This document shows positions 29,425-33,274 of a DNA stretch of 64,000 nucleotides, one piece after another. A model generated the notes under the pieces. That model searched no databases, was not told where the DNA came from, and saw only the letters and a program-made list of their open reading frames with translations. Where the stretch lies: sequence record NC_019538.1; one strand, given 5' to 3'. Positions within the stretch are counted from its first letter, which is position 1, and each line of letters opens with the position of its first letter. The position numbers and the translations under genes were made by a program.

Positions 29425-29674
29425 TATGATGGTTTTAGAAACAGAAAAAGTAAATTTAGCTGGAAGAATATACCCACTAGATATAGCAAACCAAATATGT
29501 TCTGTTCAACCTATAGATCCTGAGCCATTTCGAAAACTGTATGAGCGGGCTAAAGAGAACGAACGTATTAAGATTCGTCTTGCTAAAACCTTTATGGTCC
29601 CTGTATCGAGGATCGATGCATACTGCGTGGAAGCATATCGAATTGGTATAAAAGAAAGTAAAAATAAAAGTTAA
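29414..29674 (+). CDS. hypothetical protein
   Basis: 86-aa ORF overlapping the upstream stop. Confidence 0.65.
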   Translation: MRNDMMVLETEKVNLAGRIYPLDIANQICSVQPIDPEPFRKLYERAKENERIKIRLAKTFMVPVSRIDAYCVEAYRIGIKESKNKS

Positions 29675-29711
29675 ACATTCTTTCTTGTTGTGATATGATG
29701 TTTATATAAAT
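29666..29711 (+). promoter_or_regulatory. sigma70-type early promoter driving the tRNA cluster (copy 1)
   Basis: AAAAGTTAAACAT, 17-nt spacing, TGn-TATGAT, then GTTTATATAAAT; near-identical copy at 30823-30868. Confidence 0.75.
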
Positions 29712-30432: not shown

Positions 30433-30824
30433 ATAAACGTGATATCCATCTCATTGGTATTAGTAAGTTTGTCAAGAAAGGTCTCACTGTTATTCAATCT
30501 AGTTTGATCTTCAAGCAAACAAGTGATGAATGGAAAAATCTCCATGATGTTGATGTGGACAAAATTTATTGCTATATTAACAATGATGGTAAGGATATCT
30601 ACGCAATTGGTAGACTCAAATCCTGTTGTGGGCCTTGGTTGAGTGTTAGTTGTCGTTCTCTTCGTAAAAAAGGTTATATAGCATTTGACTTTAACGATGA
30701 AATTGAGATACCATATGGTTCTGGGATGAAAACTGCTTATAGGGTGTTGTTTTCTGATACCCCTAAATACGAGTATGAAGAAGCCAGACATCCAGTCGCT
30801 TACTTCGAAAAATACTTCAAATAA
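30429..30824 (+). CDS. hypothetical protein
   Basis: 131-aa ORF, ATGA overlap. Confidence 0.7.
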   Translation: MNKRDIHLIGISKFVKKGLTVIQSSLIFKQTSDEWKNLHDVDVDKIYCYINNDGKDIYAIGRLKSCCGPWLSVSCRSLRKKGYIAFDFNDEIEIPYGSGMKTAYRVLFSDTPKYEYEEARHPVAYFEKYFK

Positions 30825-30868
30825 AAGTTAAACATCCTTTCTAACTATGATATGATGTTTATATAAAT
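30823..30868 (+). promoter_or_regulatory. sigma70-type early promoter driving the tRNA cluster (copy 2)
   Basis: Same architecture as 29666-29711; tRNA-Arg starts 2 nt later. Confidence 0.75.
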
Positions 30869-32114: not shown

Positions 32115-32390
32115 CTTAGCACAAAGAACGGGTAATGACGTATGCCCCGGAATAAGCCAGCCATAGAGAATCTGGATATCCTGAAACGTGCCATTAGGTT
32201 TCAGGCGGGATTGGTAGTATAAAGACGATATGGTAACTACCCCTTGACAGGCAGGGTGAAACTTGAGGTAACAGTCCTTTACCAAACAACGAACAGATGG
32301 ACAAAAATCGGTTGAACGTCCTTCCTCCTTGTGATAGCATGTCAACCAAGGATATAATCACAGTCTAAGGATCCTGATTATATTCCGCCT
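32115..32390 (+). ncRNA. candidate structured ncRNA between tRNA-Pro and tRNA-Thr
   Basis: ~275 nt, no plausible plus-strand ORF, multiple stems. Confidence 0.4.
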
Positions 32391-32466
32391 GCCGGGTTAG
32401 CTCAGTTGATAGAGCGACGGTCTTGTAATCCGTAGGTCGTGGGTTTGAGTCCCACACTCGGCTCCA
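32391..32466 (+). tRNA. tRNA-Thr(TGT)
   Basis: GCCGGGT/ACTCGGC acceptor, loop CTTGTAA, CCA. Confidence 0.9.
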
Positions 32467-32472
32467 AATTTT

Positions 32473-33020
32473 GGATTCTCGTCAATAGTCCGGTCTATGA
32501 GAATCGACGCTTTAAGTGGCCCACCGGTATTTGTAAAGAGTGACTGTCTCTAGTGGAAGCTAGAAAATAAAAACCGAACCCCGACCTCTCCCATTACTCA
32601 AATGGTGATGTAGGTTCCTTTCCTGTAATAAGGTTCCTGTCCGCGACGGGTAAAAGGTTACATAGGGAGTCTGCTTGTGAATGACCACTGATCCAAGCCA
32701 TCACATAAGCGCGTCTGTAATGACGTTAAATATAAAGGCTTAGATTCCCGAAAGGGCCTAAGCGTAAAAGAAGGAGCCAGCGAATTTATTTTCTGGTGTA
32801 CCGAGAAACTAGTATATTATTCCTTCCATATAATGTTATATGTTCTGGTTGATATACGTTAGGCGAAAAGGCTTAGATTATCCCTCTGGGATCCTAAGCG
32901 TAAAAGTAACGAGCAAGACCTTCTTGTAGGCTTAACTCATTGGGGTGTTTGAGGTTTACATGTGTGGGCTCGGGTAGCCAATGCTATTAAGTCCGGTGAT
33001 GGTGCGACCGGATCGATTCT
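32473..33020 (+). ncRNA. candidate large structured ncRNA(s) between tRNA-Thr and tRNA-Trp
   Basis: ~550 nt without an ORF; many stems; duplicated hairpin motif at 32734-32770 and 32867-32906. Confidence 0.5.
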
Positions 33021-33095
33021 AGGGTGTTAGTATAGTGGTATTATGCCGGATTCCAAATCCGTGCGACTGGGGTTCGAATCCTCAACGCCCTGCCA
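33021..33095 (+). tRNA. tRNA-Trp(CCA)
   Basis: AGGGTGT/ACGCCCT acceptor, loop TTCCAAA, CCA. Confidence 0.9.
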
Positions 33096-33274
33096 ATTTA
33101 CGGAACCACAACAACAAGTATGTGCCTTGGTGGTTCGACCTGCTTTGCAGCCGCACATGAAGCTAAAACTTAAAAAGAGAGGTTGTATATGTCACCGCTA
33201 AACGCAAGCCGTTAGGACGTAAAGGTAAAAATAGTGTTTTTGTAAATGGTTATACCAATAGTGGTATTCCGGTT

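Follow-up and report, generated by a model that had tools for sequence, protein, structure and literature searches.

A modular spacer in the tRNA cluster of Aeromonas phage CC2 and a pseudoknotted RNA module that it shares with many other phages

In the T4-like Aeromonas phage CC2 (Straboviridae, Ceceduovirus), the 554-base spacer that separates two tRNA genes is more probably a chain of separately inherited, folded RNA modules than one RNA. This corrects the picture of the spacer from a single molecule to a modular one. One of the modules, here called B, belongs to a far larger family than CC2 alone revealed. The family crosses phage families (Straboviridae and Demerecviridae, with the inner core also in Vequintavirinae). 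Covariation strongly supports a complex pseudoknotted fold for it, and there is no Rfam entry for it. Ever since the T4 species 1 and 2 RNAs were described, structured RNAs in phage tRNA operons have raised the question of what they do, and B shows how widely one such module can be distributed.

The window, by which we mean the whole 64,000-nt stretch of CC2 DNA that was analysed, contains the spacer at 32467-33020, which corresponds to 200210-200763 of record NC_019538.1. Together with its flanking tRNAs the spacer forms the end of an 11-tRNA cluster. The features that bound it are these:

32329-32358, + strand: sigma-70-like promoter match TTGTGA-18-TATAAT, a match to the consensus only, just 5' of tRNA-Thr
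32391-32466, + strand: tRNA-Thr (TGT), left boundary of the spacer (ARAGORN, Rfam)
33021-33095, + strand: tRNA-Trp (CCA), right boundary of the spacer (ARAGORN, Rfam)

The promoter-like site is, on its sequence, a possible start of a transcript that runs from tRNA-Thr through the spacer to tRNA-Trp. The spacer is free of open reading frames, as the earlier note on this DNA had stated: none of at least 60 aa lies inside it, and the longest that overlap it have 34-42 aa. At the gathering score, Rfam 15 matches only the two tRNAs and nothing within the spacer, and at E <= 10 the single sub-threshold match in the spacer is to a minus-strand snoRNA model (E 8.3), which is at chance level. Inside 32467-33020 no cloverleaf is called by ARAGORN or by the Rfam tRNA model.

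Some features of the surrounding cluster deserve mention in their own right. For NC_019538.1 196210-204763 the RefSeq record of CC2 gives no tRNA features; ARAGORN finds eleven tRNAs in the window and Rfam nine. Directly upstream of two tRNA subclusters stand the copies of a 61-nt repeat (29651-29711 and 30808-30868, 84% identical), each with promoter-like hexamers and then TATAAAT. After tRNA-Trp, at 33096-33165, the interleaved strings GAACCAC/GTGGTTC and ATGTGC/GCACAT form a candidate H-type pseudoknot, and this stretch is conserved at 93-100% in P19, G2 and phage 65, whether or not tRNA-Trp is present.

To compare the spacer among phages, we searched it by blastn against 50,697 phage records, of which 26 contain matches. 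The order of modules was derived from an alignment of eight relatives and from module-by-module blastn. The modules of CC2 and the arrangements found are as follows:

32467-32545: module A
32546-32735: module B
32723-32866: segment C, a partial duplication plus insert found only in CC2
32867-33020: module D
CC2: Thr-A-B-C-D-Trp-E
P19 and AS-szw: Thr-A-B-D-Trp-E
G2, AS-zj and Asswx_1: Thr-A-B-D-E, with tRNA-Trp lost
Phage 65: Asp-A-D-E; avDM6: Asp-A-D
ZPAH1 and Aswh_1: x-B-D-Trp, where x is a different upstream sequence
T5-like phages AhSzw-1, Akh-2 and Mru1, and also Ahp1_CNU, Ci1 and S13: B core alone

In other words, parts of the spacer are present or absent independently of one another across relatives. 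Because the arrangements differ in this way, the single noncoding RNA of about 550 nt that had been proposed for this region is unlikely. What holds of that proposal is a conserved structured RNA on the tRNA strand, since both covariation and conservation are found in relatives. Separately, close relatives of CC2 are losing tRNA genes of the cluster: tRNA-Trp is internally deleted in AS-szw (L020:1910-1963) and absent in G2, AS-zj and Asswx_1 (L012, L021 and L022, around 1904).

The stems of the RNA had been read in the earlier note from complementary strings, every one of which lies exactly where it had been placed:

32474-80 and 32499-505: GATTCTC and GAGAATC
32549-53 and 32560-64: TCTAG and CTAGA
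32592-97 and 32605-10: CATTAC and GTGATG
32588-92 and 32665-69: CTCCC and GGGAG
32673-80 and 32701-10: GCTTGTGA and TCACATAAGC

Several of these stems give way to other pairings that do covary. CTCCC/GGGAG and CATTAC/GTGATG do no better than shuffled alignments, with 57.6% of cells paired and no compensatory change, and the partner of the GGG in GGGAG is instead CCC at 32580-82 (PKb, below). GATTCTC/GAGAATC is supported by a single compensatory pair, at which phages 65 and avDM6 have C-G in place of U-A. Both strands of the TCCGGT/ACCGG pairing, proposed as a pseudoknot, are invariant.

The pairings that covary most extensively lie in the core of module B, a member of the unnamed widespread phage RNA family. 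Its parts in CC2 are:

32549-32564, + strand: TCTAG/CTAGA, a small hairpin that separates A from the B core and does not vary in close relatives
32569-32667, + strand: B core
32572-75 with 32613-16: PK1, AACC/GGUU in CC2
32580-82 with 32665-67: PKb, CCC/GGG in CC2
32591-93 with 32603-05: P3, a variable hairpin
32617-21 with 32653-57: P-alpha
32622-24 with 32631-33: P-beta, the invariant CCU-GUAAUA-AGG
32635-37 and 32639-41 with 32645-47 and 32648-50: P4
32673-32726, + strand: two hairpins (32673-32710, 32712-32725) 3' of the B core, with conservation limited to CC2-type phages, ZPAH1 and Aswh_1

We model the fold as a three-way junction of P-alpha, P-beta and P4, crossed by PK1, which would join the 5' end to the strand before P-alpha, and by PKb, which would join the 5' region to the 3' tail. 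The predicted result is a nested double pseudoknot. Two crossing long-range helices are a feature of the family, and the CC2 copy has both; it also carries the signature hairpin of the family, CCU-GURANA-AGG, in the junction with P-alpha and P4.

The six helices were first read from 13 distinct sequences. In that alignment 94.6% of cells are paired, compared with 84.9% in shuffles, and both partners have changed at 9 of the pairs. For covariation the score is 0.269 as opposed to 0.105; none of 500 shuffles reaches the former value, and all controls in which the pairing was slid score far lower. A covariance model built from the 13 sequences (R1) was then applied after a pattern scan of IMG/VR, which gave 47 matches, 42 of them distinct. 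In this larger set, whose 47-row alignment was fitted to R1, 89.2% of cells are paired as opposed to 70.1% in shuffles, and 13 of the 20 nested pairs carry compensatory changes, with a covariation score of 0.478 as opposed to 0.152. P-beta is identical in all 42 distinct sequences, many of them from loci retrieved by a pattern that fixes 20 core bases, whereas P-alpha and P4 covary. Each position of PKb and P-alpha takes three to five kinds of pair; the two variable pairs of PKb in the 47-match set are CG/UA/AU/GC/UG and GC/CG/AU/UA. PK1 takes forms that include AACC/GGUU, AAGC/GCUU, AAAGG/CCUUU, AAAGA/UCUUU and GGGAA/UUCCC, and its longest helix has a mean of 4.98 pairs with its own partner compared with 3.90 +/- 0.14 when partners are swapped.

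The alignment also indicates which strand is folded. The + strand has U-G pairs, and at one pair in P4 these account for 26 of 29 scored cells (13 gaps). Such pairs would be A-C mismatches on the opposite strand, and the folded molecule is therefore RNA of the tRNA strand. RNA-type libraries contain divergent B cores, and a wastewater metatranscriptome yielded a 210-nt contig that equals 32522-32731 with one mismatch, although contigs from RNA libraries cannot show transcript ends and may stem from DNA carry-over. In the literature, neither sequence-word nor topical searches turned up an account of the motif; a catalogue from 2023 with 10,006 candidate phage RNAs (PMC10690425) lay outside this comparison.

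Looking across phages, the B core recurs at 84-89% identity in genomes that are otherwise unrelated. Its carriers include the T5-like Aeromonas phages AhSzw-1, Akh-2 and AhP_Mru1, Ahp1_CNU-2021, Citrobacter phage Ci1, Cronobacter phages S13 and LPCS28, and metagenome contigs, and in the Aeromonas, Citrobacter and Cronobacter phages and the contigs it is always on the same strand as neighbouring tRNAs. With R1, T-even relatives reach 41-55 bits (E about 1e-6 to 1e-9); Erwinia phage Virsaitis27 has 51 bits and the Mosigvirus PNJ-6 has 45 bits (E about 1e-9 to 1e-10). In Vequintavirus only the inner three-way junction is kept. The scan of metagenomes added only 4 loci and one new type of variant. 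In two T4-like phages of IMG/VR the core occurs in tandem, with copies about 21 nt apart (L054:5082-5305 on the - strand, L057:8966-9190 on the + strand), the second copy having a minimal P3. Bacterial genomes gave 37 pattern hits, of which one is real (112 bits) and all others score at most 22 bits. That one (L083:2950-3052) sits on a 4.9-kb contig binned into a Phocaeicola MAG and is probably mis-binned phage DNA.

The settings of B are as varied as its carriers. In Aeromonas phages of both the T4-like and the T5-like kind it lies in tRNA arrays. In T4-like phages of Cronobacter and Citrobacter it lies behind a lysozyme gene and before a promoter-like site, which in Ci1 and S13 is 3' of the element. 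In T-even relatives it always precedes vs.8 (phrog_1488, weakly P-loop-like) in the same orientation, with a variable gene upstream. We looked for vs.8 in five phages that bear the RNA (CC2, AhSzw-1, Ahp1_CNU, Ci1 and AlexBoehm) and found it in none of them; B is thus not tied to vs.8, and a coupling of B to the Vs.8 protein was rejected on the same ground. The B RNA is phage-borne, portable and independent of any single neighbour. A reading of B as a tRNA mimic or T-loop was also rejected, the UUC-containing stretch not being conserved across subgroups.

The family extends to T4 itself. The best match of R1 in the whole T4 genome is at the denV/vs.8 junction (NC_000866.4 64847-64940 on the - strand, equivalent to L036:1048-1141), and its 24.8 bits are counted in the range of pattern-only false positives from bacteria, at about 16-22 bits. 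This copy is the most divergent of the family, and it is synteny and a chain of blastn matches, not score, that link it to the rest. Rfam gives no match to it either at the gathering score or at E <= 10. With the T4 element as query, blastn matches 1097 phage records, most of which carry no annotation at the matched position. In T4 itself, vs.8 has an annotated start that overlaps the element, and the PHROG match begins at residue 43 of the protein. This suggests an annotated start that runs over a noncoding element: annotated codons 1-42 are probably part of the RNA and its conserved noncoding tail, not of the protein, and the start probably lies about 42 codons too far upstream. T-even-type copies (for example L039:1255-1300, L044 and L048) are followed by a conserved AUGGA.. 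and then by a GCCA-NGGAA-UGGC hairpin before vs.8. A small leader peptide at this place was considered and rejected, because the frame is not conserved and one phage stops at codon 3; the conserved stretch looks like RNA rather than a leader peptide.

How such modules would act can be outlined. We suggest that they would be transcribed on the tRNA strand within the tRNA operon, with co-transcription presumably from 32329-32358, and that processing of the flanking tRNAs would release them or leave them as stable pieces. B would be a self-contained folded domain that binds a conserved partner, either a protein or a small ligand, and not the regulator of a single gene. An autonomous domain of this kind is suggested because the same RNA sits in very different neighbourhoods. 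From this autonomy and the invariant nucleotides of its junctions, we tentatively read B as an autonomous partner-binding RNA.

Alternatively, B may be a cis-acting leader, such as a riboswitch-like aptamer or a protein operator, that controls a downstream gene or RNA, vs.8 in the case of T-even phages. We regard this as unlikely, but it accounts for several observations. In all T-even-type loci the element is directly upstream of vs.8 in constant orientation whatever gene lies on the other side, and 3' of it stands a conserved hairpin whose loop is GGAA. A Shine-Dalgarno sequence and an ATG lie within about 50 nt 3' of the element in the metagenome contigs L028 and L029, and aptamers are typically compact, pseudoknotted folds of this kind, with junction bases that do not vary. 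Counter to this, about 600 nt downstream of the element in CC2 are free of annotated genes, and about 520 nt are free of open reading frames of at least 60 aa. A strong Vequintavirus promoter, TTGACA-17-TAAAAT, intervenes before the next gene, and the promoter-like site after the element in Ci1 and S13 would likewise separate it from what follows. The absence of vs.8 from five phages with the RNA argues in the same direction, and no expression platform based on alternative pairing was found. The probability left over by the readings of B belongs to others, among them a protector of RNA ends.

The predicted topology of B invites comparison with ribozymes, and B might be a self-cleaving HDV-like ribozyme that would cut polycistronic phage transcripts, including tRNA precursors. 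HDV-like ribozymes have a P1 of 6-7 bp whose first pair, at the cleavage site, is a G-U wobble. Their catalytic cytosine is the first position of J4/2, and HDV-like 'theta' ribozymes are documented adjoining phage tRNAs, with the cleavage site of this subgroup within about 5 nt of the tRNA (PMC10879173). B resembles them in its nested double pseudoknot, with the same order of strands (P1, P2, hairpin, P1', P4 domain, P2'). The existence of tandem copies and a PK1 that reaches 6-7 bp in a few members would also suit a ribozyme, as would the precedent of theta ribozymes beside phage tRNAs. In most members, however, PK1 has 4-5 bp, its first pair is A-U and not G-U, and no P1.1 can be drawn. The last junction, before PKb, reads UUACAUA (UAAAUA in the T4 group) and so begins with U where the published criterion places the catalytic C (PMC10879173). 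A three-way junction replaces P4, and a variable hairpin replaces P3/L3. The nearest tRNA end is at least 66 nt from the element in all tRNA-bearing loci, the T-even copies have no tRNA nearby, and no Rfam ribozyme model matches at E <= 10. We therefore rejected membership of B in the HDV-like or theta ribozymes, since the defining features are missing even though the topology fits; cleavage by an HDV-like ribozyme is, in our judgement, improbable.

A more far-reaching reading is that the B family is a new class of catalytic (self-cleaving) or ligand-sensing RNA, built on an HDV-like double pseudoknot, that moves between unrelated phages by acting on a conserved component of the host. We give this little credence. 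If it were true, such a class would have been overlooked in T4 and in more than a thousand lytic phages.

It is also conceivable that the spacer apart from B is largely non-functional, made up of duplications, scars left by recombination and the remains of decayed genes in a tRNA region that changes quickly. The region is plastic: tRNA-Trp is deleted or broken in relatives, the B/D junction of ZPAH1 contains a different insert, and a private duplication is present in CC2. Homing-endonuclease genes lie near the region in P19 and ZPAH1, and segment C has no relative anywhere that we searched. The remaining two modules argue the other way, and we consider the idea quite improbable. Their features are:

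32467-32545, + strand: module A, with a 5' hairpin (32474-32482 with 32497-32505) and a second small hairpin
32867-33020, + strand: module D, a four-helix RNA (RNAalifold)
Module D, helix 1: GCTTAG/CTAAGC stem with a CCC/GGG tip
Module D, helix 2: CGAGC/GCTCG multiloop with a long covarying hairpin
Module D, helix 3: TAGC/GCTA hairpin
Module D, helix 4: GTCYGGT/ACCRGAT hairpin

Module D is present in 20 of 20 Emmerichvirinae records at 84-94% identity over 150 nt, and four of its pairs have compensatory changes, for example GTCCGGT/ACCGGAT to GTCTGGT/ACCAGAT. Module A, whose first hairpin begins directly after the 3' end of tRNA-Thr, keeps that hairpin through a compensatory change, with one further change to a wobble. 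It occurs in CC2, P19, AS-szw, G2, phage 65 and avDM6, and the 5' hairpin is absent in ZPAH1 and Aswh_1. Both modules are confined to close relatives of CC2. A blastn search of the phage collection found D in no record outside Emmerichvirinae, and a model of D (R2) matches D of CC2 and its partial duplicate and nothing in T4, AhSzw-1, Ahp1_CNU or Ci1. We regard A and D as lineage-restricted structured RNAs of one operon, with modest covariation among few distinct sequences.

Segment C is a different case. It includes the first copy of a motif repeated at 32734-32770 and 32867-32906, as had been observed before; in full the repeat covers 32723-32780 and 32856-32918, with a local alignment score of 56 against 21 +/- 3.8 in shuffles.

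32723-32780, + strand: repeat copy 1, which duplicates in part the 5' hairpin of module D (R2, 38 bits; alignment)
32781-32855, + strand: 75-nt insert between the repeat copies, private to CC2

The apical hairpin of this motif had been described as co-varying between the copies. Its CCC/GGG pairs are in fact identical in both copies and in all relatives; the copies differ only in the loop, and the second has two additional A-T pairs. Copy 1 repeats in part the first ~60 nt of module D, and among properly assembled genomes CC2 alone has two copies, relatives with clean assemblies having one. We sought a second copy of the insert (32771-32866) in the CC2 genome and in relatives and found none. 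Judged from its sequence, segment C is a partial tandem duplication of the first hairpin of D, private to CC2, together with a unique insert, and nothing suggests a function of its own. The UNVERIFIED Assk record has a run of N flanked on either side by identical D-hairpin sequence (L008:1808-1893), and its apparent duplication may be an assembly artefact.

ROOL and GOLLD are large RNAs, with families in Rfam, that occur near phage tRNA genes, and the spacer resembles them as a long, ORF-free, structured stretch beside phage tRNAs. That the whole spacer is one ornate RNA of ~550 nt comparable to them is nevertheless very improbable: its size, its location next to the tRNAs and a minimum-free-energy fold that pairs both spacer ends would fit, but the end-to-end pairing is lost in phage 65 and avDM6, the energy of the whole-spacer fold is a weak signal (z = -1.79; 5 of 100 shuffles fold equally well), relatives that lack A, B or C in varied combinations keep the rest, and no ROOL, GOLLD or other Rfam covariance model matches at E <= 10, the chance-level snoRNA match apart. 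The CC2 stretch splits instead into independently inherited modules.

The closest historical parallel is T4 itself, to which the earlier note had pointed. In reviews of T4, rnaC and rnaD are the only small RNAs of unknown role (PMC3014915; PMC9697503). There is no resemblance in sequence: the T4 RNAs have tRNA-like ends, the T-arm-like GGTTCGAATCC in rnaC and ...CACCA in rnaD, with nothing comparable in the spacer, and by blastn, R1 and R2 no module matches the T4 tRNA/rnaC/rnaD locus. The T4 homologue of B lies away from these genes, at the denV/vs.8 junction. The part of the analogy that stands is position, since the species 1 and 2 RNAs (rnaC and rnaD), like the CC2 spacer, are non-tRNA folded RNAs on the tRNA strand of a tRNA operon. 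Because B is present in T4-type model phages with easy genetics and biochemistry, its function can be tested directly.
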